From Piromyces finnis finn (Eukaryota; Fungi; Neocallimastigomycota), in the NCBI GenBank assembly GCA_002104945.1, contig MCFH01000064.1, positions 231,663 through 295,662 on the forward strand: DNA of 64,000 bases, in the 5' to 3' direction. The notes under the pieces are model-generated. The model made no database searches. It saw nothing but the letters and a program-made list of their open reading frames with translations, and was not told the DNA's origin. Numbering within the stretch: the stretch's first letter is position 1; every line of letters begins with the position of its first letter. Positions 14,745 to 42,586 of this stretch are shown piece after piece. Both the position numbers and the translations under genes were made by a program.

Positions 14745-14783
<39 letters not shown>

Positions 14784-16310: not shown

Positions 16311-17270
16311 TTATTCTTTTTCATCATTTTTATGCTGTGATTCAGGTGATATCTCGGTTTTATTAGATATTATGGGATTTGAAAGTGTAGAATCTTTTTC
16401 CTTAAAAGTTGGCATATAGGTTGGATATTGACCGTAGTTTTGTTGATAATTTTGAGAAGCGTAATCTTGTGGATAGTTTTGTTGATAATTTAGAGGGTAA
16501 CCTTGATAGGTGTAATAACTTTGATCTGAGTATTGACCTTGTTGATAAGATGGAGGTATTGGCATTATACCATTATTATTAGTAGTATTGATATCATTTA
16601 AATTATTATAATTATTATTATTGCTATTATTTATATTATTATAATTATTATTAGTAAATTCTGGAAATAGTTGTCCAAATGTATTCGATGGTTTAGCATC
16701 ATCATTTAAACAATGTTGAACATATTGCCCATTTAAATATGGATTAGATCCATTTGAATTATTCGAAGTAGATTGATTATTATTTGAATTTGAAGGAAGG
16801 GTGATGGAAGTCATTTGGGGTGAACTATTTGGTGAAGGATTAGAAGTATTTAAATTATCATTATAGGGAAAATAGCCCATTTGATAATTGTTAGGAGTAT
16901 AAATTGTCTGCATTTGACCACCATTATTTTGTGAATATGAATTTTGGAATTGATAGTCATTTTGCATATCAGTAGTTTGATTTTCATTATTGAAAGGGTA
17001 AGGAGTAACTGTATTATTTGCATTTTGTTTTGTTTTGGCACATTGAGAGCAACAATATAAAATACCAAACATGATGATAACAAAAACAATAATAGCAAAA
17101 ATAGCACTAAAAGCTTTTCCTTTACCTCTTTTTTCCAAATGAACAAAGTGGGATGGTGCTATTTCATGATTATAATTTAAATCTTTACTATTAATGACAT
17201 TTTCATCATCAATTTCCTTAAAAAAATTATTTATAACAAGATTAATTAAAAAGTATTGAATATTATCCAT
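16311..17270 (-). CDS. Single-pass membrane protein without signal peptide (array gene A)
   Basis: 319 aa. LEKR motif, then TM (AFSAIFAIIVFVIIMFGILY), then CCSQC and an N/Q/Y/P-rich tail containing PPSY. A-rich start context. Confidence 0.8.
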   Translation of the reverse strand: MDNIQYFLINLVINNFFKEIDDENVINSKDLNYNHEIAPSHFVHLEKRGKGKAFSAIFAIIVFVIIMFGILYCCSQCAKTKQNANNTVTPYPFNNENQTTDMQNDYQFQNSYSQNNGGQMQTIYTPNNYQMGYFPYNDNLNTSNPSPNSSPQMTSITLPSNSNNNQSTSNNSNGSNPYLNGQYVQHCLNDDAKPSNTFGQLFPEFTNNNYNNINNSNNNNYNNLNDINTTNNNGIMPIPPSYQQGQYSDQSYYTYQGYPLNYQQNYPQDYASQNYQQNYGQYPTYMPTFKEKDSTLSNPIISNKTEISPESQHKNDEKE

Positions 17271-17811
17271 TTTTTTTTTATTCTACTTTTTTTTTTTTTT
17301 TTGTTAAATATTAATAGTATATAATATATATAATATTCTTTTTTATATCTACTTCACGATATTTAAACTCTATTGAAATAAGATAAAATCTACAAAAAAA
17401 ATATATATATATTTAAGATATTTTATTAATTTTTATATTTTATTTTATTTAAAGAAATGAAGGATATCTAAGGATATCTAAATATGATAATAATGTATAT
17501 TTAAATATAAATTACATGTTATATTAATGGAAACATTATATTAAAGTTAAATAGTAATTTTAATTTTATTCCATATAATATTTTTAAAATTAAAAGAAAA
17601 ATAAGTTTTAGATTTTATATATATAAATACTTTTTTTTTTTTAGAAAAAAAAAAAAAAAAGACAAAAAAAAAAATAATAATAATTAGTTACACATATTTA
17701 TTATATTAGGATAAATATAATATATATATAATAAAAAAGTATACAGTCAAAATATTATCTTTAGATACTTTTTTATTATTTAAAATTTTATTTTTTTTAT
17801 AAGAGTTAAAT

Positions 17812-18732
17812 TTATTTATTTTCATTTTCGTTTGAACTATTTTTTGTGTTATTATTTTCTTGATTTGTTTTATCTTTATTATTAGTTTTTGATGTTTGAT
17901 TGGCTTCTGGAGATGTGGATGGAGGTGAGGATGAGGATGTTTGTTGTAAATTTGATTTAAAGGAGGAGGAAGAACTATCACATTGATGATTAACCATGTG
18001 TTGTGGTGGTGGTGGTGGTTTTGAAAAAAATGGACTAGGATAATTTTGAGAAGGGAAAAATCCTGGTGGAGGATACATAGCAGGTGAAGGTGGATCATTT
18101 CTATTTGATGTATTAAAACTATTAGGTCTTTTTGAGTGATACTGTAGAGGTGGAAAAATACAGTCATTTGATGGTATTACAATTTGGGTCATTTGTACAG
18201 GTACAGAATAAGTTTGAATTGAAGTATTCATTGTTTTAATTATGGATGGGTCATCATAAATATTTACATCATTTAATTGGTTATAGGCTTGCTGAGAATA
18301 AGCTATTGAATTTTTTAAAGTGTCCTCGGATGAATTATTGTCCAATTGACATTCAACAATATTATTTCTTTTATAATCACGATATTTTATAATTAATAAG
18401 ATTAAAAAAGTGATGGAATATATGAAAATAGCTAATAAAGCAAATGATGCTAATCCCACTAAAACCAATCCCACGACACTATCCTTCAAGGTAAAAATCA
18501 TAAGACATATAAGACCAGCAAATAAAATAATGGAAATAAAACTGAGGACACTTAATCCAATAATACCAATTTTATGGTTTTTTTTAGGTGTAGGTATATA
18601 TTTCATTTTACATTTTTGATTTTGATTTGGTATCAAATTTGCATTTGAAATGTATGGATTAGTATTTAAATACATTATTTGTTGATTATTCCTACAGGTA
18701 TAATCCATTGTTTTATCAGGAGGAGGGTTCAT
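17812..18732 (-). CDS. Two-TM membrane protein with Pro-rich tail (array gene B)
   Basis: 306 aa. Two adjacent hydrophobic helices (IGIIGLSVLSFISIILFAGLICLMIF; VVGLVLVGLASFALLAIFIYSITFLILLII), followed by KYRDYKR and a PPP-rich tail. Confidence 0.8.
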   Translation of the reverse strand: MNPPPDKTMDYTCRNNQQIMYLNTNPYISNANLIPNQNQKCKMKYIPTPKKNHKIGIIGLSVLSFISIILFAGLICLMIFTLKDSVVGLVLVGLASFALLAIFIYSITFLILLIIKYRDYKRNNIVECQLDNNSSEDTLKNSIAYSQQAYNQLNDVNIYDDPSIIKTMNTSIQTYSVPVQMTQIVIPSNDCIFPPLQYHSKRPNSFNTSNRNDPPSPAMYPPPGFFPSQNYPSPFFSKPPPPPQHMVNHQCDSSSSSFKSNLQQTSSSSPPSTSPEANQTSKTNNKDKTNQENNNTKNSSNENENK

Positions 18733-18867
18733 AACAATGAATTATAATTTTGTTTTGATCTTTTTTTCTTTTTCTTTTTCTTTTCTTTTCTTTTTTTTTA
18801 TATTTTTTAATAATAATTTTATATTTGTTTTATTACTTTATATATTTTAGTTTGATAAATTTATTTG

Positions 18868-18909
<42 letters not shown>

Positions 18910-19994
18910 CGTTGTTGTTATTGTTGTTATTATTTTTTAACAAAATATTGATATTATATTTTTTTTTTTTTTAAAAAAAAAAAAAGTATAAATAATAATT
19001 TAATTATTTCAAATTTAAAAATATTGATATTGATATATTTAATAGTAGAAAAAGTTTAAACATAAATATATGATAAATATTGATTCCATATAAGATATAT
19101 ATAAAAAATTAAACTTTGTATTCTAAAAATTGACTTTTATTATTATTATTATTATTATTATTAAATATATATAATATATATTATAATATATATTATATAA
19201 TTTTTTTTTTAAAATTTAAAAACTAGTTGGTACTGATTATTATTTTAGTAGGAAAAAGAAGAGAATATTTTAAAATTTTTAATAAAAAACTATTCTCTTG
19301 ATCTCTAGCTTAATAATGATAATAATAGTAAATAAAAAAAAAATAGGATAAATAGAAATGAGATGAAAATCATATATTTTAATTTGCATTAAGATGCTTT
19401 TTTTTAATATTTTAATAGTTAGATTAAAGAAAAGAAAATAATAAAAAAATATCATAAATTAAAAAAAAAAAAAGAAAAACAAACTTTTATTATACTATTT
19501 ATTTTCTCAATTATTATATTTTTATTTTTATTTTTTTTTTCATCAAAGTTTATGAATAATTAAAAGTAATTTACATATTTAAAAATCTTTATTTAAATTT
19601 TGATTTTTTTTTTTTTAGTACATATTAAATTTTGCTTTATAATATTTGTAAATTACATGTTAATTTATGTTATTTTACTTTCCCAATTGATATAGAGGAC
19701 ATATATAATATAGATATAAAAAAAATAGAGAGTAATAAAAAAATGAATTATAGATACAATAAATGAATGAAAAATATATATATTTATTTCTAATATAGTC
19801 AGCTAATAATTGTATAATAATTTTATGTATTAATGAAGTTATAAACATAAAGAATGAAAAATTAAAAAAAAAAAAATTGAATGCATATATATTATTAAGT
19901 AGTATTAGTAATTGTAATATTATGCATATATATGAAAAAAAGAATAATTTTATAATTGATGAAGGTGTTATTAAATTTTGATATTAGGTTTTTT

Positions 19995-20702
19995 TTAAGC
20001 TGTATTTTTAGTAACTTCAGTTGAAGTAATATCAGTGTTCGCAGGTGTATCGGATGTATTATTTTTATTATTATCATTTGAAGTATTTTCATCTTCATTA
20101 TGAAAATTTGGTTGCATAGGGAATGAAGAAGAAGGCATATTATTTTGTGACGGGTGATTATTATTGGATGTTGAATTAAAATTTGATGGTGGATGAATGC
20201 GATGAGGAGGAGGGCATTCAGGGCGTGAATATTGATGTCTAGAAGATTGATAAAAAGGTGCATAATAATAAAATTGAGGATATGTTTGTCTACCTCGACC
20301 ATAGGTACTTTGGGGACCATGAGGGGCAAAACTTGGAGGTGGTGGTGGATAATAACCGGATGGTGGAGGATAGTAATAACCATGCTGGAAAGGGTATTTT
20401 TGTTGTCTGATACAATTTCCTGCTGTTTGTTCTAATGGAGTTTCATATTCCGTGTGAATATCATCATCATCATCAATTTCTATATCAATTCTATTTTTCC
20501 TTCTTCTACAACATCCAATAATCAATACTACGAATAAATATAAAATAAAAGAAAAAACTAAAACCCCAAAAATACATACTGTAATTAATCCAAATAAACT
20601 TATATCTTCATTTCTACAATGATAATAACAGCTTCTCTTACTGATACGAGAAGTAATTTTTGAAGAAAAATTTGAGAAGTTCTCATTATTAATTAAAGTC
20701 AT
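19995..20702 (-). CDS. Single-pass membrane protein (array gene C)
   Basis: 235 aa. ISKR motif, TM, then GCCRRRKNRIDIEIDD and a tail containing YYYPPPSGYYPPPPP. Confidence 0.8.
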   Translation of the reverse strand: MTLINNENFSNFSSKITSRISKRSCYYHCRNEDISLFGLITVCIFGVLVFSFILYLFVVLIIGCCRRRKNRIDIEIDDDDDIHTEYETPLEQTAGNCIRQQKYPFQHGYYYPPPSGYYPPPPPSFAPHGPQSTYGRGRQTYPQFYYYAPFYQSSRHQYSRPECPPPHRIHPPSNFNSTSNNNHPSQNNMPSSSFPMQPNFHNEDENTSNDNNKNNTSDTPANTDITSTEVTKNTA

Positions 20703-21607
20703 TTTCTTTATTTTTTTCTCTATGATATCATGAATTATATTTTAGTGTATAAATTATTTTTTATTTTATTTTAACTTATTCAAAGGAATAGTCTCAATAT
20801 TTAATGAAAAAAAAAAAAAGAGAGAAAAACCAAACCAATAACTCTAAATAGAGCAATTTTTTTTTTTTTTTTTTGAAGCATATTAAAATAAAATATATAT
20901 TATTTTATTTTAATTAATTACCGTTTATAAACTTTAATTATTATATTTTCACTTTATTAACGGAAAATTTATAAAATTTTAATTATCTTTAAAGTAAAAT
21001 TAAAAATAAAAAATTATTAATTTATATCATATCACATAATACTTTATTGCTTATAATATACATTATATTTTAGTATAATAGATTATTTATACCATTTAGT
21101 ATTAACATATATGTATTTTATGTTTATATTTTAAAACAAATTTATTGCTTTTTTTATTATTATTGAAAATTTTTGTAATTAAAAATGGTACATTTAATAT
21201 TCATTTCACATTAATTATGAATTATTGATATGCTTATAATTAGTTTTTATAATAATAATATTAATAATAATAATAACAATAATAATAATGATAATGATAG
21301 AAATAAAAAAATATTTATATTTTTGATATATAAATTTTTAATAAAAATAAATATGAATTATCCATATGATGTATTAATATATAAAAAAAATCCTTTTTTT
21401 TTTTATTATTATTTGTTATGATAGATTTTACATTTATATATGTATTATCAATTTTGTATATATTTTAGTGCAAATGTAAGCAAGAAAAAGAAAAAATTGT
21501 AAAAAAGTTGTTATAATAGTAATATGAATATGCCTTTTTTTTTTTTTTTTTGGAAATATGTGTTATTTTTCTTTTTTTTTTTTTTTTTATTGAAATGAAA
21601 ATGAAAT

Positions 21608-22480
21608 TTAAGAGTAATAATTTGATCGTTGTGGTTGAACAAAACTAGAAGCTCTTTTATTTGATGTATGTGTACTAGGAGGAGGAATGGTCATACTATT
21701 AATACTTTTATAAAATGGTGTTGAAAAGGAATGACGTAAACCTTTATTTTGATTATAACTTTGATTAGGAGGATATAATTGAGATTGATAAATGGAACCT
21801 GAATAATACTTTTGAAATTTAGAATTTGTAATACTGGGATTATTAAATGAATTATATGGTGTATAAATACTAGTATTACTCATAATAAAACTTGGACTAT
21901 GAGATGTGGGTTGAAATGTAGTACCATTATTCATAATAAAACTTGGACTATGAGTTGTGGGTTGAATTGTAGTACCATTATTCATAATAAAACTTGGACT
22001 ATGAGATGTAGGTTGAATTGTAGTACCATTATTCATAACAAAGCTAGGACTATGAGATATTGGTTCACTTTGAGGATATAATATACTTGTTTGTCTTGAT
22101 GAACCAATGGAATAAGGATTGATAATATTACCAGCATCCTCTACTTCATCTATTTCAATACCAATTGTATCTCCTTTCATTTTCTTTTTTCTTCCAATGA
22201 ACGAAGTCACAATATATAAAACAAAAATTCCAATAATCAAGACAATGATAACGATAAATATTATGATGATAATATTACGAAGTTCATTTCTTTTTGCTGA
22301 TGAAGATGTTGCATTGGAACCATTTCTTTTATAAATATTAATGGTTGAAGTTGAATCAAAACGAATATTTGAATTATCGATATAATTTAAATATTCATTT
22401 TTAATGGACTGTAGATATTGATCTTTATTTCTCTTAATATATTTATATAAATCCACCATACTATATTTCAAAATATTCAT
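21608..22480 (-). CDS. Single-pass membrane protein with 17-aa tandem repeats (array gene D)
   Basis: 290 aa. IYKR motif, Ile-rich TM, then RKKKMKGDTIGIEIDE. Tail carries three copies plus one partial copy of SHSPSF(I/V)MNNGTTIQPT. Confidence 0.82.
   Translation of the reverse strand: MNILKYSMVDLYKYIKRNKDQYLQSIKNEYLNYIDNSNIRFDSTSTINIYKRNGSNATSSSAKRNELRNIIIIIFIVIIVLIIGIFVLYIVTSFIGRKKKMKGDTIGIEIDEVEDAGNIINPYSIGSSRQTSILYPQSEPISHSPSFVMNNGTTIQPTSHSPSFIMNNGTTIQPTTHSPSFIMNNGTTFQPTSHSPSFIMSNTSIYTPYNSFNNPSITNSKFQKYYSGSIYQSQLYPPNQSYNQNKGLRHSFSTPFYKSINSMTIPPPSTHTSNKRASSFVQPQRSNYYS
21868..22062 (-). repeat. Coding tandem repeat, 51-bp unit, ~3.5 copies
   Basis: The block gtagtaccattattcataataaaacttggactatgag recurs at 51-bp spacing and encodes the SHSPSF..NNGTT.QPT repeat. 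Confidence 0.9.
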
Positions 22481-23342
22481 TTTTTTTATATATTGATATT
22501 GGTCATAGAGAGTTAATGTTACAATTTTTATTTCTTTTTAAAAATTTTTCTTCATTAATATTAAGCTTTTTTTTTAAAAAAAAATAAAAGACGTGTATAT
22601 GAGTAAATAATTACATGGAAAATAAGATTAAGTAAAAAGGTATTATAAATTTTTTTTTTTAAAAAAATAGTAATGAATAAAAATAAAAATAAAATTAAAA
22701 AAATGTAAACTTTAATTATTAAAAAATTTATACATTTGATTTGTACCTTGAAAACTTTGATTTAATTTTTTTTTTTTTTATTTATTTTATTTTATACTTT
22801 ATTAATATAATATTTATTTGTTTAATAAAAATAATGTATATTTTTATTTTTTTTCTTTATTAATATGATGTATTTTTTTTAGAATTAAGTTTTCTTTCTT
22901 TTCTTTTTTTTTTTTTTTTTTTTGTTTAAAAAATCATTTTATTTTTGGAAAATTAAAATAAAAAATATAAACATTTTATTATATAGCTATCATTTTAAAA
23001 AATAGTTATATTTATATAATAATTATTTTAATTGTAGTTGTTGTTTTTATTATTTGGTTAAAGTTTATTTAATTTATAAAAAAAATGAATTGTTAAACAT
23101 TTTTATATTATATAATCAGAATTTATTAAATAAATTATCCTTTTATTTTCTTATTTATAATATATAATAATTTTATTATACTACTATTGCATTTTAAAGT
23201 TAATTATTTTATTGTATAACCTTGTATTTATTACAACATCATCCATTTTGTATATGAATGTACCATTTTTAAATGTATATTAAAAACAAAATAAAATATA
23301 GTTAATAAATATCTAAAAGTATTTTTTTTTTATATCAAATTA

Positions 23343-24038
23343 TTATTTTGGTTGTGGCATATTTGTTATAGTATCTGAATCTAATATTTTGTTGGTTTCT
23401 AAATTTGTTAAATTAGGTACATGAGTTGATTGATTTATTTTCATAAAATTTTCATCAAATTTGTTTTCTTTATCTTTTGGTTGTGGCATACTTGTTATAT
23501 TTTCAGGGTTAACTGAGTCATTCATTTCTAATTTTGTAAGATTAGGAATGTTAGTAGGTACATTATCATAGGATTGAAAATTATTATTTTGTATAAAAGA
23601 ATTTTGTGGATATTGAAGATTTGTATTTTGTTGGTAACTATTGTCATTATTTATTACAATATCGTTTAGCTTATTAGTTTCCTCTGTATCTTCGATATCA
23701 ATAGTATTTGATTTTTTCTTTTTTTGCTTTATATACCATATCAATACAAAAATAATTATGATGACTACAATTATAGCTACAGCTATTAGTATTCCGGTAA
23801 TACCTCCTCCTGATTTATTTTTATTTTTATTATTAGTTTTATATATTTTACTACTATTGAGTTTTGAAGTTTTTTTTCCGCTTGATTTTGAAGATTTCGA
23901 GGAAGAAGAAGATTTTGAGGAAGAAGAAGATTTTGAAGATCCTTTTGGAATTCTTTTAAATAATTTATTTTTTTTAGTATCATTATCACCATCATTATAA
24001 AGGTATACTTTATTATTATAATAGTCTATAAATTCCAT
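23343..24038 (-). CDS. Single-pass membrane protein with Ser/Lys-rich ectodomain (array gene E)
   Basis: First ATG is at 24038 (the track started at a TTG at 24062). MEFIDYY...LFKR, then an S/K-rich stretch, GGGITG, TM and KQKKKKSNTIDIED. The tail contains two copies of PNLTxLExN...ITxMPQPK. Confidence 0.8.
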   Translation of the reverse strand: MEFIDYYNNKVYLYNDGDNDTKKNKLFKRIPKGSSKSSSSSKSSSSSKSSKSSGKKTSKLNSSKIYKTNNKNKNKSGGGITGILIAVAIIVVIIIIFVLIWYIKQKKKKSNTIDIEDTEETNKLNDIVINNDNSYQQNTNLQYPQNSFIQNNNFQSYDNVPTNIPNLTKLEMNDSVNPENITSMPQPKDKENKFDENFMKINQSTHVPNLTNLETNKILDSDTITNMPQPK

Positions 24039-24751
24039 GCTGTATGTATAAATCAATGCCAATGAAAGTTTTGATTTTAATAATAATAATGATGTTGAAT
24101 TTTTTCTTCTAATATTTTCTAATATATATATTTTATACTTTTTTTTTTCTGAATATTTAATAATTTTTCAATTTATGACTATCTTTTATTATAAGTAAAT
24201 TCTTTTTTTTTTTTTTTTTTAAATAAAAATTCTCCCTTTAGTATAGTTAGCTATAAATGATTCTCTGTACAATGAATATTTTTTCTATTATTGCGTTACA
24301 TCATCAGTTATAAAATAGACCTATTTTTTATATATAATAAAAACTATTAAAATAAAAAAAAAGTGTAATAAAAAAGGTATTAAATATTTTAAAAGGAAAA
24401 AAAAAAAGATGCCATAGATACAATTCTTTAATAATTGATAAAATAAACTTTTTATAATTGAATATATATTAAAATCTTGATTTATACGATGAAATTTCTG
24501 TTATATATGTATGTGGTTAGGCTATATTTTTATTTTTAAGAATAAAAAATTGATTTACCATATAAATAATTAACTTTTGTTTAAAATAATATTTCAAAGT
24601 AGTAAATTATTTTTTTTATTAATTATTATATATATATATATATCTACATTAAACAATACTTTACCTAAAAATTCATATCCTTATTTTTATAGAATAAAAC
24701 CTTTGAGAATTCATACTACTTTATTAAAATTCAAATACCATTTCCATTATT

Positions 24752-24773
24752 TTATTATTATTATTATTATTAT

Positions 24774-24857
<84 letters not shown>
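24752..24857. repeat. (TTA)8(TAA)n microsatellite forming a spacerless palindrome
   Basis: A TTA run at 24752-24775 directly abuts a TAA run starting at 24776. Confidence 0.9.
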
Positions 24858-24858
<1 letters not shown>

Positions 24859-26339
24859 TATATTTATGAATTTCCAACATTCTTTTATAATTATCACATG
24901 TAACATACACGTGCAACAAAACATGTTTAGGCAGTTTATTTCGTGTAACTTTTCTTTTAAAATGGCTTGTAGTACGTTAAAATGATTGGTAATCAATAAT
25001 TTTCTAATAATTTTCTTTTTAATTATGAAAAAGTTTAAGTAGTAAAACCCAGTCAAAAAGATTTTTAAACTAGCAACAACAAATTTTATAGCAGTAAGAA
25101 AAAAAAAAGTTTTATATAATAGTAATAGTAATAATGATCATTATTTTATTTGTTGTTTAAAGTTTTTTACTTGCAAAAAAAAAAAAAAACTTTATTAATA
25201 TCATTTTAATATTTTAATAAAACAAACTAATTAATTTAAGATTTTTTTATAATAATTTTGATTTGTATTTTTTAGTATTGTATTGAAATGATTTTTTTTA
25301 ATAATATTAATAAAAGATTAATTTAAAATTTAATTAGTAATTATTATTTAATAAAAGTTTTTTTTTTTTTTTTTCAACTATTAAATATAAAATAAAATAA
25401 ATAAAAAAAGAGCATACTTTTTTGGTGTATTTTTTTTTCCTAGGTTCTATTGAATTTTAATTTTAAAAAAATTATGCATAGTGCAAAAGAAAAAAAAATA
25501 TATATTTATTTGATCAATGATTTAAAAGTTTAAAAACTTTAAAATTTTGCTACTTACTTTTATTGTTGGAAAAATTAAAAATTGCCAAGAATTCATGAAG
25601 GAAAAAAAAAATTTTTAGGTAAAAAAAGAGGAGAAGGATAATGAAATCATTCTAAAGATGATTCTTTTACAAGTTTATAATTGTGAAACTATTTTAATAA
25701 TTTATAATTATTATTTTAATATTAATAATAATTAAAAAATAAAACAATGATTTCATATGTTTTTTTTTTGATGCCACACCATTCTAAAAAAAGAAATTCC
25801 TAAAATACCATAAAACACCATAAAATAGCATCGTCAATTTATAAAAGTTCAGCTTTTTTTTTTAATTGAACCTGGTTAAAATTTCATTGTTTTTTTTTTT
25901 AATTTAAATAATATATTAATAATAAATTGATTCTATAAAATAAAATTTAATTAAAAATTAAAATAACAATATATTAATTTTAATTTAAAATAAATTTTTT
26001 ATTATTTTTTTTTAAAAATAGTAAAAAAAGTTTATTTTATAGTAAATTCAATTGACAAATAAAATTCTCAATTTTATATAAAAAGGTTGAGAAAGAAACC
26101 ATTTTCTTTTTTTTTTTTTTTTTTGTAAAAACTAAAACAATTAAAATAAAAATAAAATTAAATAATAAAAAATAAATAATAAATAATACATACTACTGAA
26201 GTATTATACATACTAAATATATATATTAACCTTTTTAAAAAAAGAAAAAAAAGAAAACTTTTTTTGTTAATAAAAAAAAAAAGTAGAAAAATATATAGTC
26301 TTTTAAAAAGTATAATAGTTAATCCAACTCAACACAAAA

Positions 26340-27260
26340 ATGGAAGGTATTATGGATAATGTTATTGATTCATCAAACTTTTTTACTAATGATGTAGTAG
26401 AGTTATACGCTAGAGCATCAAGTAAGTCAAGTACAAGTTCAAAAGCAAGTTCTTCTTCATCCAAATCAAGTTCTAGTTCTAGTTCTAGTTCTAGTTCTAG
26501 TTCTAGTTCTAGTTCTAGTTCTAGTTCTAGTTCTAGTTCCAGTACAAAGAATAAATCAACTTCTTCTTCTTCCAGTTCTTTAATTTCTAGCTCAAAGTTA
26601 AAGTCAGCTTCTAAAGTGTCTAAAAAGACAAAGAAAGGTGGAAAAGGTGGTGGTAGTATATTGGGATTAGTTATTGTAGTTGTTATTATTATAATTATTG
26701 TAATTGCTATAATATACTTTAGAAAACATAAGAAGAGTAAGAAAATTAATAAGATTGAAAAACCAGCAAAAACTGAAGAGGAAGAACCAACTGAAGTTGT
26801 AGTTGTTAATAATGAAAGCCCATATCCAGAATCATCTAATGAAGAAGGTAAAACTAATGCTGAAATTTCTCAACAAACTCCATATCCACAAGATAGTAAT
26901 AATAATGGTGATATTACTCAACAAACTCCACCAGGTCAATATCCTCCACAAGGCCAATACCCACCACCAGGTCAATATCCACCACAAGGTCAATATCCAC
27001 CACAAGGTCAATATCCACCACAAGGTCAATATCCACCACAAGGTCAATATCCACCACCAGGTCAATATCCATATGGTATGCCACCAATGACTATGCCACC
27101 AATGACTGAAGGATTCCAACCACAAGGATTTGTTACTCCTTCTCCATTACCAGATGGTACACAACCAAATGCTTTACCATCTAACACAGCTAGTACTGAA
27201 CCAGAAAATATTAATGCTATGCCAATGCCAATGCCTATGCCTATGCCAATGGCAAAGTAA
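26340..27260 (+). CDS. Single-pass membrane protein with poly-Ser ectodomain and (PPQGQY)n tail (array gene F)
   Basis: 306 aa. LYAR motif, poly-Ser encoded by (TCTAGT)n, GGGSILG, TM and RKHKKSKK. About 7 copies of PP(Q/P)GQY (18-bp unit). Ends PENINAMPMPMPMPMAK. Confidence 0.85.
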   Translation: MEGIMDNVIDSSNFFTNDVVELYARASSKSSTSSKASSSSSKSSSSSSSSSSSSSSSSSSSSSSSSSSTKNKSTSSSSSSLISSSKLKSASKVSKKTKKGGKGGGSILGLVIVVVIIIIIVIAIIYFRKHKKSKKINKIEKPAKTEEEEPTEVVVVNNESPYPESSNEEGKTNAEISQQTPYPQDSNNNGDITQQTPPGQYPPQGQYPPPGQYPPQGQYPPQGQYPPQGQYPPQGQYPPPGQYPYGMPPMTMPPMTEGFQPQGFVTPSPLPDGTQPNALPSNTASTEPENINAMPMPMPMPMPMAK

Positions 27261-29851
27261 ATTTAAAATTTCTATGATGATAGAACTTTAAAATTTACTT
27301 ATTTATATAGTCTTTTTTTCGTTATTCCTTATCATAATTTTTTTTATCAAAAAGCGTATATACAATTCATTATTTAACGAAAAACATTTCATTTTAAAAG
27401 CGTGATTAACTATTATATCATTCAATAATTAAATCTAAGAAAGAAACTATAAAAAAAAAGTTTTCTTTTTAAATTTTAATATATATATAAATTTAAAATG
27501 CAGATTTGATAATTTATACATTAATGATATACAAAAACAAAAAAGATATTTAATAATATACATTAATAATGTATAATGATGATATATATATTACGAAATA
27601 AATTAAGTCTAATAATATTTCAGGTTTTTTTTTTTTTTATAAAAAAAGAACCTCTTATTAATATATATAAAATAATTATCAATATTTAATTTTTATTTAT
27701 AAAAACAATTATAAAAACAAACAAAAACATTAATATTACTTTTGATAAAGTAATTTTGTTTTTTTTTTTAATATAAGAAATATTAATATGTACAATTTTG
27801 TTTAAAAAGAATAAGCAAGAAAACAATTCCTTGCATTTATTCAAATATTAATATATGTACAATAGTTTAAAATTAAATTATAAATATTATTAATAATAAT
27901 ATATGAAAAAAAAAGTTGAAATAAAAGAAAAAAGAAAATAAATAATGAATTGTTATTTTTTTTCTTTTAAATTTTCTTTTAAACTTTTTTTTTTTTTTTT
28001 TTTGAAATCATATATTTAAAAAAGACAAAATATTCAGGAAACAAAAACATAACAAATTAATCATTATTATTATATACATATCAATATATTAATATCATAT
28101 TATAGCAATAACACTTAATATTCATAATAAAGTAAACTTTTTCCTAATTGTTAATGATTTAATTACATTAGAGAATTTTCATTGATATTCATTTTAGTGT
28201 ATCATTGGTTTTAATTTATATTTTTAATCAATAAATAAAACAAAGTATAATAATGCGCTAAATAATAATAGTAATTTTAAAATTGCTAGTCATATAAATA
28301 TGACTTTTTTTTATTTTGTAAATTAAATAATTAAATAATTTAATATTCATCATCGTAAAAAAAAAAAAAAACTTTTTAAACATTCAAATAACTATGGCTT
28401 TGAAATTTTACTTTTTTTTTTTTTGAGTGTTTCATTTTTAAACTTTTATAGTAATAAAAAAGCTTTTTTTTTTTTATATTTTATCTATAAATGTTATTTT
28501 TTTTACTATTTTTGTATTAATTATAAAAATTTTAATATTCAAGGTATATTAAAAAAAAATTAAACTTTTTTTTTTTTTTATTTTAATGCATTATGAGCAG
28601 ATGCTAAGTTTCAAGTATAAATTAAAAAAATTATTTAGCTTTGATGTAATATGATAACATGTTTATTGGTGGTGCCTCCCTTACCGTTATGATGTTGCCT
28701 ATAGCTTACATCTTTACGTATTACTATTATGCTCTTTAAAAAAAAAAAACAATTTATCAAGGGTGATCTATTATTAAAAGTTATATTTTTACCTTTAAAA
28801 TTGGATTTATAAAATATTTATTCTGTGTAAATTAATTTATTTTTTAATTAAAATATTTTTAGTTATTTATTAATTTATTTATTTCATTCATTTACTTTTA
28901 TATAATAAAATAAGAAATTTATTTATTTAATTTATTTATTTTTTAATAGGATAGGAAAAAAAAAACAATTAAAATGTGAAATTAAATGATGAAAAATGTG
29001 AAATTTTAATATAAAAGAAAATACCATAAAATTAAAAATGTTTCAGGTTAAAGTTATTAATTTTACTGCAACCTCATTCGTTCAGTCGTTACAACCTTAA
29101 CCAAAAAAATCAAGTTAAAAAATGTTCATTTTTTTATTATAAAATTTATAAAATTTAAAAAAAAGAATAATAATTAAAATTTTAAAAAAAGTTATAATTT
29201 TAATGTATCAATGGAAGGGGTGAACCAGTAAAATTTAGTAAAAAATCATTTTATTAATATTATTATATTTTATTAAAAAAAAAAAATTATTAATTAATGA
29301 AGCCGTTTTTTTAAATTACATCAAAATTTCTTGTATCCATTATTTTATATATAAAGTATCTTCTTTTTTTTTTTTTTTTTTTTTTCACAATAATATTTAG
29401 GAAAGGGAAGAAAGAATTTAATTTTAATATTTATTAATATGCAAAAGAAAAATAATTGAAGAAAAAAAAAAGTAAATGAATATTTAAATATTTAGTTGTT
29501 GACTTTTATACTATTTCATTATTATGAAATATCGTATAAAATAATATAAAAATAATTATATATACGTTTAGTAAGAAAAAAGTTAACAATATATTTATTA
29601 TTACAAACAAACAACAAAAAAAAAAAAAAACATAAATAAAAAAAATTGTCTTTTTTTTTTAAAAAAATATTATTGTATTTTGAATATATTAATTATTTAT
29701 ATCTTATAAAAAAGTTACAATTGAAATTTTAACATTTTTTAAAAAAAAAAAATAATACTTAACAATATAAATAATACCAAGAACTAATAACCAAAGTATA
29801 ATAATATTATTTAAAAATAATAAAATAAATAAATAAATAAATAAATAAAAA

Positions 29852-32292: not shown

Positions 32293-32325
<33 letters not shown>

Positions 32326-32477
32326 TAATTTAAATATAAAATATTATTATTATCTTTTATTAGAAGTATCAACTTTTTATAAAAGTTAATTCAATACTAT
32401 ATATATACTTTTTTTGTTGATTTAAATATTACTTTTTGTATTTATTATAAAAAATGGTTATTAATTTGTTTTAAATT

Positions 32478-32622
<145 letters not shown>

Positions 32623-33576
32623 TATGTTATTATTATATATAACAAAAGGCTTTACATTTATAATATTTCAATTATTAAGAGATAATATTTAATAATATTA
32701 AACTAATTATTAAGATTTACCCATATCAAAACAAAATTATGTTTTTATATTAATATCAAGATGGTTTTTATTATGATTAACTTAAAATAATAATATAATA
32801 ATATTATAATAATATTATCAGACAATTTATGCATAATAATAAATTATATAAAACATAAAAAAAAAAAAAAAAAAACTTTATATTAAAATTCATATATTTT
32901 TTATTAAGTAATTTAATAAAATTAAAGGTTATAAATAATTTTAATGAAAGTATTAGAATTAAGAACTAAAAATAAACCAAATTTTATTTATAGTTTTTTT
33001 TTTTCTTCTAAGTTGTTTGGATGTTTTTTAATTATTTTATCAAAGAAAATTTTTTATTTCAAAACTAAATATAAATTGATTTTAATTTAGATATATTTTG
33101 TATTTTTAATCGTTTCAAAATTCATGATTATTGGGAAAAGGAAATAAAGTAAAGTAGATAATAAAATATAAAAGATACTACGTTTTTATTAATTATTTTA
33201 CCAATAAAAATATCTTTTATTTTTAGTTTTAAAGTTTTTTTTTTTTTAAAAATGAAAATTAAAAATTTTCCATTCATTTTCATTTTTAATTTAAAAAAAA
33301 ATAAACTTTTTTTTCTTGTACAACATTTATTTTTTGTGGATTTTTTTCTTTTTATAATTTTTATGTTTATTTGACCTTTTCTAATACAACTTTTATATGA
33401 AAAAGTGATGAAAAAGTCTATATTAATAAATTAAAATGTTTGAAATCATATGGAGGAATTTAATGAAACGATAATATTTTCACTTTTTTAATTTTATAAA
33501 GAAAGCTTTTAATAGGATGAATTTAATTGAAAACATATATACTTTTATTATTTTAAAAACTTTTTATATAAGATAT

Positions 33577-33947: not shown

Positions 33948-34541
33948 ATGTATATAAAGAATACCGAAAATAAAAATGCAATGGATTCCTCTTTATGGAA
34001 TACCAAAAATGATGTTGAAAATATGGATAAACCAAAATCACATAAAAAAACAGTAAAAATATATAAATGTCGTCAATCAAAATCAGAACCTGAACCTGAA
34101 AAAGATGATTTCCAAGTAAAATACATTAAATCATCATCAGATATTGATAATGACGTTGCTACAGACACTACTACATTTTATGATAACAATAATAATGTTG
34201 AATTAGCCAATACCCTACCTATTCAAATTAATTCTACCATTACCGATAGTAATGTTTCCATTAACGAAAGTAGAGAATATAGTGAGGATCAAAGTCTTAA
34301 TAATAATGATGACCTAACTACTTCCATAACACCATTTAAAGTTCTTTGTCCAATGGCTTCTTTAGTTTTTGTTGGTTTTGCCGTAAAACTCTTTAAGAAA
34401 AGACCACTTACCACCCTTATTCTTCATAAAAATCATGAAGAAGAAGAAGAAGAAGAAAATAAAAATGTAACAAATAGTTATACAGAATCTCTTAAAAATG
34501 ATGCTATTATGAAATATCAACAATCTTATGATAGGGTTTAA
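33948..34541 (+). CDS. Probable single-pass membrane protein (array gene H)
   Basis: 197 aa. Starts MYIKN, like genes I and J. Acidic N/S/T-rich region, then a short hydrophobic segment VLCPMASLVFVGFAVKLF followed by KKR. Confidence 0.7.
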   Translation: MYIKNTENKNAMDSSLWNTKNDVENMDKPKSHKKTVKIYKCRQSKSEPEPEKDDFQVKYIKSSSDIDNDVATDTTTFYDNNNNVELANTLPIQINSTITDSNVSINESREYSEDQSLNNNDDLTTSITPFKVLCPMASLVFVGFAVKLFKKRPLTTLILHKNHEEEEEEENKNVTNSYTESLKNDAIMKYQQSYDRV

Positions 34542-37264: not shown

Positions 37265-38548
37265 ATGTATATAAATCAAAAGAATATAATACCTTCTAGT
37301 AAGGTGGAAAAAAGACAATATAATAATTATTGGCAAGGAAGCACTGATAATGGAAATAGTTATTGGCAAGGAAATGATAATAGTAATGATAACAGTTATT
37401 GGCAAGGTAGTAGTAATAATCAAAATAATGATTATTGGAATGGAAATAGTAACAGCGGAGTAAATACAAATACTGTTAATAATGCTGTTAATGAAAATAA
37501 AAATAAAGATATAAGATATTGGAAGGATGAAAGTAGTAACAATAATGATTATTGGCAAGGAAATAATAATAATTATTGGGTTGATAAAAGTAATCCTTCC
37601 TCTTCCTCTTCCTCTTCCACCTCATCAAATAATAGTAATGGAAATAGTTCAAAACCTAAAACACCAACTAAAGCAACAGTTAATAAAACGACAGTATCCT
37701 CTGCTAAACCAACAACTGTTCAATCTGTTAGTACCAATAATTCTAATAAAAATGAAAATAAACATATTAATGTTAACCCAAGTATTAATAATTCAAAATC
37801 TACAACCCCACCTACTACTAATCAAAATAATAATAACTCTGCAGTATCTGCTGCTGCAGCTTCAAGTGTTGGAGCTATGAATTCAAATTACAATACCAAT
37901 TCTAATACCGCCAATACTTATTCTAATGCAGCTAATCCAAATCCAAATACCATTACTGATGCAGGTAATAGTAATTTTGGATCCACCATAGATAACAATA
38001 CACCTCCTGATAATTTTGAAAATGTTCCAATGGAATTAAATGGTTTTGATAATAATAATAATAATAATAGTAATATTTCTAATGTTTCTAGAAACAGTAA
38101 TATAGCAAATACTGAAAATGCCTCTTCCACTCAAAAATCTAATCCTTATACTGTTATGACAGGTATTTTTTGTATCATTACTATCTTCATTTTGGGTTCC
38201 ATATACATTGTTCATAAAAAGAAACTTTTTGCTAAGGAAGCCGATGCTAATAATAGAATAATAGCAAATGATGTAATGGCAACCTATCAAAAAATGGATC
38301 CTTCACCAGTAAAAAATACCACTGAACCTACTGTCTATGTTAGTCCAAGTGTCACTGATCGTATTATTAATCCAAATGAATCGCATATCACAATAAACCA
38401 TGATTCGAATAACAAAAGTGGTGAAATAAATTTATCTAGTAGTAGTATAGATGATGTACAACAATCGGTTATGGATACTTATCAAGATATTGTAGTTTAT
38501 TCTCAAAATCTCTCAGAAGATGCCATAAATAAAACGTTGGAAAAATAA
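37265..38548 (+). CDS. Single-pass membrane protein with YWQG repeats (array gene I)
   Basis: 427 aa. VEKR motif, seven YW motifs (mostly YWQG) in Asn-rich context, S/T/N stalk, TM, then HKKKLFAKEA...ANDVMATYQKM. Confidence 0.87.
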   Translation: MYINQKNIIPSSKVEKRQYNNYWQGSTDNGNSYWQGNDNSNDNSYWQGSSNNQNNDYWNGNSNSGVNTNTVNNAVNENKNKDIRYWKDESSNNNDYWQGNNNNYWVDKSNPSSSSSSSTSSNNSNGNSSKPKTPTKATVNKTTVSSAKPTTVQSVSTNNSNKNENKHINVNPSINNSKSTTPPTTNQNNNNSAVSAAAASSVGAMNSNYNTNSNTANTYSNAANPNPNTITDAGNSNFGSTIDNNTPPDNFENVPMELNGFDNNNNNNSNISNVSRNSNIANTENASSTQKSNPYTVMTGIFCIITIFILGSIYIVHKKKLFAKEADANNRIIANDVMATYQKMDPSPVKNTTEPTVYVSPSVTDRIINPNESHITINHDSNNKSGEINLSSSSIDDVQQSVMDTYQDIVVYSQNLSEDAINKTLEK

Positions 38549-38674: not shown

Positions 38675-38800
38675 GTAATAGAAATTGACTTTTTTTTTTA
38701 ATTATTAGAAAACCCAAAAGTAATAGAATTGACTTTTTTTTTTAATTATTAAAAAACCCAAAAGTAATAGAAATTGACTTTTTTTAATTACTAGAAAATA
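38675..38800. repeat. ~45-bp tandem repeat, ~3 copies, downstream of gene I
   Basis: Unit agtaataga(a)attgacttttttttt-aattatta(g/a)aaaacccaaa, with no unique spacers. Confidence 0.8.
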
Positions 38801-41338
38801 AAAAAAAAGTCAACAAGTAGTAATACATAGTAATAGAAGTTATCTTTTTTTAACAAAAAAAAAAAAAAAAAAAAAAAAGGACATTTACCATAAAGTAATT
38901 AATTATTTATTATAGAGTAAATTTTATATAGAGATATTAATAATGTAGATACCACCATGAACAATAATATATGAAATATTATTTGTTTTTTTTTTTTTAT
39001 TATCAAAAAAATTTTTTTATTTCATTATTAGTTTTTATATAATAAATACAAAGGTAAATAAAACTTTTTTTTTTTAAAAAAAAGGGAAATAATAATTAAA
39101 AAAAAAAAAAAAAGTTAATAAAAAAAAGTAAAAAAGAACAAAAAAAAAAAAAAATAGGAATGAAAAAGTGTAGACGATTAATTTATTATCAATAAAGGAA
39201 TAGTTAAAAGTATAGATAAATTTTGATTTTATTATAAGAAAGAATGTAAAATATACTTTTTTTTTGCATTTCTTGGTTAAAGAATATTAATAATATTTCA
39301 TATTTTTTTTCATGATCCATCATTCACCAATTCCTATAAAATAAAGTTAAAATTTTCTCCTACATTCTATAATTAAAAGAAAAAACAAAACGTTTCAAGA
39401 TTTTTTTCAATTCTTTTCATGTTGAAAGATTGAACATATTTTGTCTAAAAAAGTAAATTCATCTTTTATTAAAATTCCTTTATTTGGTTAAAATTTGTTT
39501 ATTATAAAAAAGTATAAATAAATATAAATAGAATTATGGTGTGACACACTGTACTATTATAATGTTTCATTATTATATTCATTTTTTAAAATTTAGAAAA
39601 TTTAGAATGTACTTGATAATAGATAATGTATTACATTATGTATCACTAGAATACAATAATGTTTACATTAAATTAAAAATGTTTATAATGTATACATATA
39701 ATGAAAGGTTATAAAAATACAGAATTTTACATCTATTACTTAAAATTCTATAGTATATAATAGGAAATTTTTCTTTAGATGAAAAATTCCGCCGTATAAA
39801 TCATTTTTTATGTTATTTTTACTATTAATATTTAATAAAAGTTTATATGCTTTTTTATATAATTCAATAGTTTTTAGTAGTTAATGATGAAAGTATTATT
39901 TATATCTTTATTTCTTTTTTTTTTTTCTTTTACCTGATATTTTTAATAATGTCTGTATCAAGACTTTATTAATTCTTTTTTTTTTTCTCTTCCTCTTTAT
40001 TTATTTATTACTTTTAAAAGAAAAATAAATATATTAAAAAGATTTTGATATTAGTATCATTAATAATTATATATATAATATAAATATTCAATTTCTATTA
40101 TTATTAAGTATTTAATTTCTATTATTATTTAATATTTTGTCATTATTATTTTATTACAATGATATCAAATTAATATTTTGATCATGATATGCTTATTAGA
40201 AAATAAAAAATTCTCTTATTATAAAAGTATTTAAAAGTACGGCTAGAAATCTGTTTTTATTCCGCTAATATCTATTTCATAAATCATATAATTGAATAAT
40301 TTATTTCATTTAAAAGGTATTAAAAATTTATTATTTTTAATTCAACAAATAAACCTATTTTTCATGATTTATTTAGTAATCTTGTATACAGTACTATTCT
40401 ACAATTTAATGAATTATTTTTTTTACCTAGATAATCAAATATATAATAATTATTAATAATAATGATAGTAAATTCTTCTTTGCAATGTAATTTAATTCTT
40501 TAATGTAAAACATAAATTCTATCTAAATTAGTGTGATGAAAAATTTCTAAAATAACAACAACAAAAAAAAAAACCAAAACAGATACATACCGTTATTTTA
40601 AATAATAATAAAAAAAAAAAAAATTAAAATTATATTTAATAAACTTTGTAAAGATAAAAAAAAAATTATTATTAATTATTTATTATTTTTTTTTTATTTA
40701 TTTCATTATAAATTTTTTATTTAATAAAAAAAAAATAAATTAAAAAAGAAAAAATGAATTTGTTTAAAAAAAAATGAATAACAATGAATGGAATGAACAT
40801 TTTTTATGATTAATAAAATAAATTAAAAAATAAATTAAAAATTTGATTAAACCTATTAAGATCATTGTTGTATTAATCTGTCGTAAGAATCCATTGATGA
40901 ATAAAACTATCAAAAAGTCAATTATAAAAAAAATATTAATTATTAAAGTTTCTTATTTTGGAATACTAAATTAATTATAATGTTACACATATGTAATTAA
41001 ATAAAAACTAATAATGAAAAATAAATGAATTTTATATTTAATCTAACCTATTTAAAAAAAATATAAATTGTATATTTTTCCTTTTTTTTTTTTTTATTTA
41101 GATTCCTTTTATATTTTTTTTTTTTTATAATTTAATTATTTAAAAAAAAAGGTAAAAAGAGGAAAATTGTAAATATTTACGTACTAAATAAATAAATAGA
41201 AAATCAATCGACAATAAATATCTGAACTATTAAACCATTTCTTTTTTTAAAATATTATGATATTTTAAAAATAAGCAATAAACAAACGATATCGTTTTAC
41301 AAATTTGTATAAAAATAATAGAATATATTGATAAAAAA

Positions 41339-42586
41339 ATGTATATAAACAATCCTGATTTTTCTAAAAAACTTCAACCGGTTCAATGGAATAAAAACAA
41401 TGATAATGATAATGTCTATACTATTGGAAGAAGAGATGTAGTCGAAGATATTATAAATATAATAATTAATGAAATAACTAATAGAAGTCGGAAAAGTAAT
41501 TGGGATAATAAAGGACCTATTAATGATTATTATAATGTACCTCCTGAAGTTTATCAAAATAACAAACCTCAATCCCAACCTCAAACGAACAACAACAGCA
41601 ACAATAATAACAATTATAATAATAATAATAACAATAATTTCAATAACAATAACAACTATAATAGTAACAGTAATAATAGCAATAACAATAACAACTATAA
41701 CAGTAACAGTAATAATAGCAATAACAATAATAATGTATATAAAACAATTGTAAAACCAAAACCAACACAAGTTATTAAGACACCAGCACCAACACCGACA
41801 CCAGCGTCACCTGAAACTATAAATAATACTGTTTCTGAGGCAGATAGCTCAACAAAAAGTATTGACCATAAAAATAAAATTAATGAAAAGACAAATGATG
41901 ATACTACTAATACAGATAAGAACATAACCAATACTAAAAGTTTAGAAAATGAAGCTCCTGTAGATGATTTTAATGAAAATGAACCAATTGAACCTTTAAA
42001 TAATGATTTTGAAATATCTAGTGTTAGTAATTCAACCAACGAATCCAGCCTACTGACATTAAATAATAAAAATATAGCAAACAAGAGTAATATCTCTACC
42101 AGCACTAACTCTAACAATGACAATCAAAAATCTATATCATTTATTAATGTTTTCACCATTATCATTTCTATTTTCACGGTATTTATTTTGGGTGCTGTCA
42201 TTTATGTTCATAAAAAAAAGTTATATTCCAAGGAAGCCAATTTAAAACATGAAAATGTGACAGCCAACGATGTCATGACTACCTATCAAAACATGACAAC
42301 AACGTCTTCTTCGACTACCGGATATACCGAGTTAATTAAAAAAGATAAAAAAAATCAACCTTTAGAAAATTATCAAAATCCATTGATTCATTCTAATCCT
42401 TCCACTGACAATGCCACGCTTAATTATTCAACACATACTAATTCACCTCTTTTAAACGCAGCCTATCCCTTACCCACCACTACCGTAGCAATACCAGATC
42501 AAGCTTTATATTCTCAGATTGAAACAAATCCCCAAAACTATCCAAATCCCCAAACCTATTCCTCATTAAATCGTCCTACATATTAA
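41339..42586 (+). CDS. Single-pass membrane protein, paralog of gene I (array gene J)
   Basis: 415 aa. MYIN start, IGRR motif, Asn-rich repeat, TM, then HKKKLYSKEA...ANDVMTTYQNM, which matches gene I. Confidence 0.87.
   Translation: MYINNPDFSKKLQPVQWNKNNDNDNVYTIGRRDVVEDIINIIINEITNRSRKSNWDNKGPINDYYNVPPEVYQNNKPQSQPQTNNNSNNNNNYNNNNNNNFNNNNNYNSNSNNSNNNNNYNSNSNNSNNNNNVYKTIVKPKPTQVIKTPAPTPTPASPETINNTVSEADSSTKSIDHKNKINEKTNDDTTNTDKNITNTKSLENEAPVDDFNENEPIEPLNNDFEISSVSNSTNESSLLTLNNKNIANKSNISTSTNSNNDNQKSISFINVFTIIISIFTVFILGAVIYVHKKKLYSKEANLKHENVTANDVMTTYQNMTTTSSSTTGYTELIKKDKKNQPLENYQNPLIHSNPSTDNATLNYSTHTNSPLLNAAYPLPTTTVAIPDQALYSQIETNPQNYPNPQTYSSLNRPTY

Follow-up and report, generated by a model that had tools for sequence, protein, structure and literature searches.

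Opy2 is a membrane anchor of the yeast high-osmolarity glycerol (HOG) pathway, and its cytosolic tail works by short docking motifs. In the fungal wall-stress sensors Mid2/Mtl1 and Wsc and the signalling mucins Msb2 and Hkr1, a stalk rich in Ser and Thr (S/T) leads to a single helix and a basic stop, behind which lies a disordered tail for signalling; sensors of the Mid2/Wsc/Msb2 type have cleavable signal peptides (Opy2 perhaps excepted), and in ascomycetes they are single genes, not tandem ones. In the metazoan families CYYR1 (PF10873), WBP1/VOPP1 and PMEPA1, the last of which has no signal peptide, a short N-terminal side is joined by one helix, juxtamembrane Cys and Tyr residues and a P/Y-rich cytosolic tail; together with yeast Bsd2, Ear1 and Ssh4, these small one-helix PY-motif proteins act as trafficking or ubiquitin-ligase adaptors. 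Kexin proteases prefer sites of the hydrophobic-x-K-R type, such as L-E/D-K-R in the yeast alpha-factor precursor, and the known Kex2 substrates enter the secretory pathway via a signal peptide. Here we analyse a 64,000-base window (the whole stretch of DNA under study, ~18% guanine plus cytosine, GC) that forms the end of a 295,662-base contig (MCFH01000064.1) of the anaerobic gut fungus Piromyces finnis, whose genome assembly comprises 56.46 Mb in 232 contigs; the window carries ten consecutive genes for membrane proteins of comparable layout, called A to J below. Almost half of the 2,383 predicted membrane-protein transcripts of P. finnis encode one-helix proteins, many of unknown function (PMC5168858), so that the one-helix class as such is common.

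Our best explanation of the locus, which we hold with moderate confidence, is that A to J are real intronless genes for disordered membrane proteins, that they represent two gut-fungus families plus the separate gene B, and that a surface scaffold or sensor mechanism, which we infer, would account for their build. All ten consecutive open reading frames (ORFs) listed in an earlier note on this DNA, A to E on the minus strand and F to J on the plus strand, are confirmed in position and orientation (Table 1), and no unrelated gene interrupts the run, with no further ORF or GC island from A to J. The same note had described a single array of ten relatives arranged 5 versus 5, a picture that has to be given up: two families plus B take its place, and since the two genes on either side of the strand switch, E and F, are each other's nearest relatives in family 1, the equal split into five and five is incidental.

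The ten ORFs are real single-ORF genes without a cleavable signal peptide. In 150-base steps, GC content is 23-43% over the ten ORFs versus 8-19% between them, and ORFs of 197-575 codons in DNA of ~18% GC, with GC peaks that coincide with them, are not chance. In A, D, E, F and H, the start codon and the 10-50 residues that follow are kept from species to species, and in C and G the start and N-terminus are shared by Piromyces sp. E2 and an ungapped, Piromyces-like metagenome contig (Ga0302102_10002784); most ATGs stand in an A-rich context with in-frame stops upstream. Compared with the metagenome contig, P. finnis DNA is conserved only within the ORFs, apart from three short stretches (~190 bases preceding the start of F and two 53-base islands in the F-G spacer). 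For B, C, G and H (4 of 10), the exact product is present in NCBI, UniRef and EukProt, and the public models of these four genes thus equal the single ORFs described here. Exact look-up and a profile search able to pick up alternative models as well found A, D, E, F, I and J in none of the three collections, and a word-based protein search with the helix and tail of gene I gave no match. A contig search with F, G and I, which covered genomes other than that of the window, likewise gave no match. With six of the ten genes missing from public protein sets, annotation under-reports the low-complexity one-helix class, and the published P. finnis gene set seems to miss such genes. As a hint of expression, 24-45% of the words sampled from 21500-27400 occur in four transcriptome-sized runs, about the coding share of that segment (42%). 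Their lack of introns does not set the ten genes apart, the PL3, TRP and phosphotransferase genes nearby being single ORFs too. Two other interpretations were considered and rejected. The ATGTATATAAA start of H, I and J does not act as a TATA box, there being no nearby downstream ATG and protein conservation beginning at residue 1; and 2.8-kb contigs carrying a G orthologue are not transcripts, being colinear DNA fragments broken at simple repeats.

The absence of signal peptides, claimed in the earlier note, is borne out by a crude comparison of hydropathy and run length with signal peptides of the same genome, not by SignalP. Within the first 40 residues, no 8-residue stretch exceeds a hydropathy of 2.35 and most of the proteins stay below 1.3, as against 2.55-3.7 in four true signal peptides, which have runs of 9-15; the longest run without charged or amide residues in the cluster N-termini is at most 8. 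One strong hydrophobic segment was found in nine of the ten genes and two in B, as had been proposed.

To resolve the relationships among the ten genes, we built profiles from orthologue alignments and compared them by hhalign. The highest values joined E with F (99%), I with J (98%), J with members from Neocallimastix (98%), G with J (97%) and D with E (96%). Since an unrelated one-helix control from the same genome reached 95.6% against F, values below ~96% are no proof of homology, and we rejected them as such; A-E/F (88-89%), C-D (89%), C-X (92%, X being a member described below) and H-J (83%) all lie below the control. In composition-corrected BLASTP only I-J is clear (E = 5e-13) and G-J is marginal, and an N-terminal profile recovers H (E = 7e-12). 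By profiles and shared motifs, family 1 consists of D, E and the inverted F, probably together with A and C, and family 2 consists of G, I, J and a dispersed copy K, probably together with H. Common to family 1 are an M-[DE]-x-I leader, a basic cluster after the helix with NT[IV][DG][IV]E behind it, and a motif resembling [ST]PYP. Family 2 shares, on the N-terminal side (N-side), an MYI[NK] start and either WN.KND[VI][ED]N or EKR.Y.NYW, and in the helix and tail F.LG..[IY]VHKKK, NDVM.TYQ and YT[DE]LIKKD...YQ. Gene B appears to be a separate two-helix protein of no shown relation to the others, its hhalign links spanning 11-62 columns and lying below the level of the unrelated control.

Whole-genome profile searches with family 2 returned this cluster and K only. 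K (BCR36DRAFT_585534, "hypothetical protein", on contig C165) matches the profile weakly but is a true paralogue, with an MYINN start, WQPQQ repeats and the helix end LG..IVHRKR. On one side it is neighboured by ORFs of a retrotransposon resembling a long interspersed nuclear element (LINE), with endonuclease and reverse transcriptase, and on the other by a 703-aa (amino-acid) secreted protein that we read by eye as a glycoside hydrolase with ricin-type lectin repeats and two Cys-rich repeats of dockerin-like character. Transposon activity may have carried K to its present place. Matches of family 1 profiles elsewhere in the genome were discarded as ordinary type I proteins that match through helix and charges only. 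An exhaustive profile search of 1.84 billion representative proteins yielded nine at E <=0.001, namely K, G and H themselves and six others. Family 2 motifs are present in five of the six, and the weakest, P0013, matches by helix and basic stop only. Four of these six come from Neocallimastix lanati, N. californiae or N. sp. "constans" and two are JGI and Logan sequences; all named matches are "hypothetical protein", although the P0013 cluster is also labelled "phosphate/sulfate permease". Two family 2 members stand in tandem in N. sp. "constans", 5.7 kb apart, and one Neocallimastix relative starts MYINN...MEKRQY.NYW. Because Neocallimastix relatives carry its motifs, family 2 must date back to the Piromyces-Neocallimastix split or earlier; family 1 turned up in Piromyces-like genomes only. 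On present sequence data, both families are thus far found only in gut fungi. That the proteins are undescribed, as the earlier note had it, agrees with database relatives that are essentially all "hypothetical protein" and with the lack of any Pfam match above cut-off, detailed below.

The genes are not unrelated and scattered in relatives, an outcome against which the earlier note had weighed its proposal, since gene order is kept in two other Piromyces genomes. On the metagenome contig the order is PL3-A-B-C-X-D-E<>F-G-H (where <> marks divergent neighbours), and on the gapped scaffold of Piromyces sp. E2 it is PL3, a 587-aa coiled-coil gene, A, C, X, D, E<>F, G; B is presumably hidden there in an assembly gap. 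The reach of this comparison is G in Piromyces sp. E2 and H on the metagenome contig, which ends ~1 kb after that gene; within it, no orthologues of I and J beside H were found. The head-to-head E/F pair is kept in 3 of 3 genomes. Of the three genomes, only Piromyces sp. E2 has the unrelated 587-aa gene. Both relatives carry, between their C and D orthologues, the member X of family 1, a protein of ~190 aa with a helix from residue 16, then a Cys-rich ICICC...CC and SRRKKMNT[IV]D. No remnant of X was found between C and D of P. finnis, and its presence in two genomes and absence from the third indicate gene turnover within the cluster. Duplication accounts for the clustering, and the cluster would have arisen by tandem duplication and one inverted duplication before the three Piromyces lineages split.

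Table 1. Positions of the cluster genes, their flanks and associated features (positions within the window unless a locus is named).
Feature	Position	Strand	Length	Description
Pectate lyase (PL3)	14418-15701			Left flank; single ORF, N-terminal signal peptide, CBM1 module, N/W-rich linkers
Gene A	16311-17270	-	319 aa	Probable family 1
Gene B	17812-18732	-	306 aa	Two long hydrophobic helices, P/S-rich tail
Gene C	19995-20702	-	235 aa	Probable family 1
Leader remnant of C	20703-20760			Degenerate, with stop codon, just upstream of C
Gene D	21608-22480	-	290 aa	Family 1
Gene E	23343-24038	-	231 aa	Family 1; mechanical ORF extends to TTG at 24062
E-F spacer	24039-26339		2.3 kb	AT-rich, between divergent E and F
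(ATA)27 array	24775-24856			In E-F spacer
Gene F	26340-27260	+	306 aa	Family 1, inverted paralogue of E
Non-coding island	27978-28030		53 bases	Between F and G
Non-coding island	28608-28660		53 bases	Between F and G
Gene G	29852-31579	+	575 aa	Family 2
(TAA) array	32477-32624		~50 copies	Pure array
Gene H	33948-34541	+	197 aa	Probable family 2
Gene I	37265-38548	+	427 aa	Family 2
Gene J	41339-42586	+	415 aa	Family 2
CDP-alcohol phosphotransferase-like gene	47606-48961			Right flank
X, metagenome contig	L033:8763-9362		~190 aa	Family 1
X, Piromyces sp. E2	L030:7773-8360		~190 aa	Family 1
Coiled-coil gene, Piromyces sp. E2	L030:16176-17939		587 aa	Unrelated
K, P. finnis contig C165	L029:1166-2197		343 aa	Family 2, dispersed copy

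The cluster evolves fast or under relaxed constraint, and under purifying selection. Amino-acid identity among the three genomes is 33-72% for cluster genes versus 81-86% for the adjacent pectate lyase, which is the conserved left anchor of the cluster in 3 of 3 genomes, and the nonsynonymous rate (dN) is 0.15-0.73 versus ~0.10-0.12. The ratio of nonsynonymous to synonymous rates (dN/dS, Nei-Gojobori) of the cluster genes is 0.18-0.71, and values below 1 indicate purifying selection. The earlier note's "rapidly diversifying" is therefore apt as regards speed relative to the neighbouring pectate lyase, and does not extend to positive or diversifying selection, which is not shown at dN/dS <1. 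In the low-complexity parts, 21-46% of alignment columns are gapped and the repeat units differ by species.

The proteins would share one build, in which a short conserved leader, usually with hydrophobic-x-K/R-R at its end, and a spacer of variable, low-complexity sequence lead to one helix; behind the helix come a basic stop, in many cases with cysteines, and a disordered, motif-bearing tail. Within family 1, gene A has a 48-aa conserved leader ending HLEKR, the membrane segment, a juxtamembrane YCCxQC and an N/Q/Y/P-rich tail in which the islands NPYLNGQY..CLND and QLFPEF are conserved in three species; it shares 49-51% identity (dN/dS 0.37-0.38) with its orthologues in Piromyces sp. E2 and on the metagenome contig. 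In gene C, a CYYHC motif is followed by the membrane segment, 84% of which is invariant in three species, and then by GCCRRRK, IDIEID and a P/Y-rich tail. The orthologues of C are PIROE2DRAFT_20144 (Piromyces sp. E2) and metagenome protein P0007; the P. finnis protein is ~20 N-terminal residues shorter than both, and a degenerate leader remnant with a stop codon lies just upstream. In gene D, a predicted N-terminal helix (residues 8-35) and IYKR precede the membrane segment, and RKKKMK and IGIEID follow it; the tail carries 3.7 copies of a 51-base repeat peculiar to P. finnis and a motif kept in three species, YNQN.G.RHS.S.PFY.S..SM..PPP. Gene E (dN/dS 0.34-0.56) runs from the leader MEFID...LFKR through an S/K-rich spacer to GGG and the membrane segment, KQKKKK and NTIDIE, and its tail holds PNLT...NMPQPK twice, conserved in three species. 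Gene F has the leader ME.IMDNVIDSS..FF...VELYAR, a poly-Ser/Lys spacer, the membrane segment and a basic cluster, with an N-side 50% invariant in three species and a tail containing eight copies of an 18-base repeat (PQGQYP).

In family 2, gene G has an acidic N/S/T-rich N-side, the membrane segment, YRKKVLKKRK, and the conserved tail motifs YTDLIKKD.KH.TIEIYQTD and, at the C-terminus, PATLSRIQN..ND.K..PRFNSLNR; its tail is S/R/P-rich and has four copies of a 48-base repeat, the repeats being wholly different in each genome. The MYI...KR leader of both G orthologues is missing from P. finnis G, and no remnant of it was found upstream (29150-29851). Gene H, which has a full 173-aa metagenome orthologue, comprises the leader MYIKN...WN.KNDVEN, a weak membrane segment (hydropathy 1.7-1.8), FKKR and a C-terminal YTESL.NDAI..YQ. 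Gene I comprises the leader MYINQ...VEKR and NNYWQG repeats in a 295-aa N/S/T-rich N-side, a membrane segment with the conserved FILG..IVHKKK, and an NDVMATYQ tail; gene J has an N-rich N-side of 267 aa with the leader MYINN...QWNKNND...IGRR, VHKKK follows its membrane segment, and its tail holds NDVMTTYQ as well as YTELIKKD...YQ. In gene B a loop of 3-5 residues separates the two helices, a hairpin that probably leaves both ends in the cytosol; the hairpin is kept in the metagenome orthologue at 37% identity. The earlier note's low-complexity ectodomains rich in S, N, T and K do not extend to A, C and D, whose N-sides are short conserved leaders of 36-68 aa.

The conserved leader ending in hydrophobic-x-K/R-R is a new feature, and its sequence would possibly serve as a kexin site. 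It reads HLEKR in A, ISKR in C, IYKR in D, LFKR in E, VEKR in I and IGRR in J, with LYKR and IVKR in the G orthologues (Piromyces sp. E2, metagenome) and ends such as MEKR and IEKR in four Neocallimastix members, so that a dibasic site with a hydrophobic P4 stands before the helix in A, C, D, E, the G orthologues, I and J. Gene F has LYAR at the aligned place, and B, H, K and X have no hydrophobic-x-[KR]-R before the helix. Shuffled N-sides give such a motif in 2-30% of trials each; in A and E the leader motif holds the only arginine of the N-side. Genes of kexin type with a P-domain are present in the P. finnis genome.

In J, AlphaFold2 is confident about helix 268-303 only; for D it gives a helix at 59-100 plus a moderately confident stretch at 8-35, the remainder having a predicted local distance difference test (pLDDT) score below 50, and the proteins are accordingly modelled as largely disordered outside the membrane helix. 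Counts of Lys and Arg (K/R) before and after the helix are 1:5 in C, 0:7 in G, 0:4 in H, 1:4 in I and 1:5 in J, with a weaker 3:5 in D. The type III topology (N-terminus out) advanced in the earlier note thus finds support from charge bias in C, G, H, I and J and is ambiguous in A, D, E and F; the basic cluster said to follow each membrane segment is clear in B, C, D, G, H, I and J, weak in A, and balanced by residues before the helix in E and F. C and X have a clear N-out charge bias, A, C and X carry CC or CxxC beside the basic cluster, which is the usual context of cytosolic palmitoylation, and since a post-helix motif is shared across family 1, the same orientation as in C and X is the economical reading for the family. 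On these grounds an N-out orientation appears highly probable for family 2 and rather probable for family 1.

No Pfam family reached its cut-off in the ten proteins or in ten orthologues and paralogues. The best score, 25.7 bits against a cut-off of 31, was for CYYR1 in the E orthologue of Piromyces sp. E2, and CYYR1 had no match among the P. finnis proteins. Sub-threshold Pfam matches (RIFIN, glycophorin, podoplanin, CYYR1 and others) were not accepted as family assignments, being driven by the membrane helix, and ESM Atlas structure matches were set aside too, all having TM-scores below 0.5, which are meaningless for disordered models. A language model returned clusters of Mid2/Mtl1, Opy2, syndecan and opalin as look-alikes, all at scores below 0.9 (0.76-0.78 for the fungal sensors) and hence leads only.

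Set beside the described systems, the cluster proteins resemble several and coincide with none. Opy2 (PF09463) has the same single-pass layout, and its cluster is a look-alike of D at 0.77 (a lead only); in Opy2 the Ser-rich region N-terminal to the helix is extracellular and heterogeneously glycosylated (PMC6347418). However, the Cys-rich domain of Opy2 is absent here, two cysteines before the helix (CYYHC) occurring in C only; there is no Pfam match to it and no sequence similarity, and neither a K-R-ended leader nor a tandem array is an Opy2 feature. Likeness to Mid2/Mtl1, Wsc, Msb2 and Hkr1 lies in the S/T-rich stalk, single helix, basic stop and disordered tail, and the Mid2/Mtl1 cluster is a look-alike of J and D at 0.77-0.78 (again leads only). 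Unlike those sensors, the cluster proteins have no signal peptide and are tandemly arrayed, and the ten proteins and ten orthologues or paralogues gave no match to Mid2 (PF04478), WSC or mucin-domain Pfam families. CYYR1, WBP1/VOPP1 and PMEPA1 share the short N-side, the helix, the juxtamembrane Cys/Tyr and the P/Y-rich tail, but the PPxY of CYYR1 is not conserved: where P. finnis A has PPSY, both orthologues read PQSY, and PPGY is confined to C of Piromyces sp. E2. Finally, the leader ends LEKR, VEKR, MEKR, IEKR, LFKR, IYKR, ISKR and IGRR recall Kex2 substrates; the difference is that a site in the cluster proteins would reach the lumen only by N-terminal translocation of a predicted signal anchor.

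From these comparisons we infer topology, glycosylation, cleavage, location and function as follows. The membrane helix would be an uncleaved signal anchor that exposes the N-side and keeps the tail cytosolic (type III); the N-side, rich in S, T and N, would be glycosylated and form an extracellular stalk; the leader may be removed by kexin in the Golgi; and the tail motifs would dock cytosolic partners, making the proteins surface scaffolds or sensors. The working principle would then be that of Opy2, of Mid2- or Wsc-type sensors and of the signalling mucins. Short motifs conserved within otherwise disordered tails are what one would expect of cytosolic docking sites. A role as sensor, adhesin or recognition molecule, as put forward in the earlier note, is unproven, its basis being analogy of layout alone. 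Several observations count against this proposal. K/R flanks are ambiguous in A (4:2), E (4:5) and F (6:7) and weak in D; the N-side net charge is +14 in E and +9 in F; conserved N-x-T sequons in the E tail would fit a tail that faces outside; with only ~5 residues between K-R and helix in A, cleavage by a luminal protease would be awkward; the leader is lost in P. finnis C and G, and is hence dispensable in those members; and the family links of A, C, X and H come from short motifs and synteny, not statistics.

The first three of these points are what an opposite, type II orientation of family 1 (A, D, E, F, perhaps C) would draw on: N-terminus in the cytosol, and a C-terminal P/Q/Y/N-rich domain outside, associated with the wall or adhesive. 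We consider this unlikely, although it is the strongest of the alternatives. The sequons of the E tail, NLT and NIT, are conserved in three species and the A tail has 10, but chance sequons arise in N-rich sequence; the predicted N-terminal helix of D would be harder to translocate late, and yet the N-out bias of C and X, with a post-helix motif common to D and E, and the palmitoylation-like context of CC/CxxC make a shared orientation with a cytosolic tail more economical.

Only slightly less probable, and likewise doubtful, is that the proteins reside in internal membranes (endoplasmic reticulum, Golgi, endosome or vacuole), their tails serving as trafficking or ubiquitin-ligase adaptors in the manner of the PY-motif proteins introduced above. 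The sub-threshold CYYR1 match of the Piromyces sp. E2 E orthologue does span helix and P/Y tail, but membership in that family is not shown; the tails are rich in P, Y and Q, and Y-x-x-hydrophobic motifs (YTDL, YTEL, YQKM, YQNM) are conserved in family 2, but canonical PPxY is rare and not conserved; and while the N-sides of A, C and X are very short, those of I, J and K, at 200-300 aa and S/T/N-rich, resemble an exposed stalk.

An extension of the surface reading, that the leader is a pro-peptide carried to the lumen, with no signal peptide, by the downstream signal-anchor helix and then cut by kexin, we regard as improbable. If true, the tandemly expanding type III set would release small peptides (MYIxN...WNxKNDVEN, MDxI...) or unmask sensors, a route of peptide secretion or receptor maturation not described in fungi.

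Least probable by a wide measure is that hidden upstream exons supply signal peptides and make the proteins ordinary type I, the outcome that the earlier note had itself raised as damaging: the plus-strand intergenic spaces are large (2.4-2.8 kb), other one-helix genes of the genome have a signal-peptide exon followed by an intron (locus L013), and ...ACAG stands directly before the ATG of E, but such exons are made unlikely by the conserved starts and N-termini (in family 2, MYI(N/K) holds across genera), the A-rich ATG contexts with in-frame stops upstream, the end of DNA conservation at the ORF edges, and the public models of B, C, G and H, which are exactly these single ORFs.

PF03211 and PF00734 were matched on the orthologue of the flanking pectate lyase, and on the other side no eleventh member was found between J and the phosphotransferase gene. 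Scans for tRNA genes (22600-47000) and Rfam families (22600-47500) gave no match, and the E-F spacer, which contains an (ATA)27 array, held no convincing exon or exon-like ORF. A pure (TAA) array lies between G and H, and metagenome assemblies break at comparable simple repeats. The two 53-base islands between F and G align to the metagenome contig at 81-83% identity while the surrounding AT-rich spacer is unalignable; the island nearer to G sits on a local GC bump and holds TTGATGTAATAT...GCCTCCCTTA. Neither island has an open frame or an Rfam match, and they could be a regulatory element or a small RNA.

At present the locus is a well-documented orphan cluster, not a demonstrated new mechanism. 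As such it turns part of the "dark" one-helix class of P. finnis into a defined example, two families with a described build, motifs and evolutionary history. If the N-out topology and the kexin site are both true, the cluster would show that long disordered ectodomains can be exported without signal peptides, and its members would be candidate surface molecules for contact with plant fibre or partner microbes in a biotechnologically important fungus.

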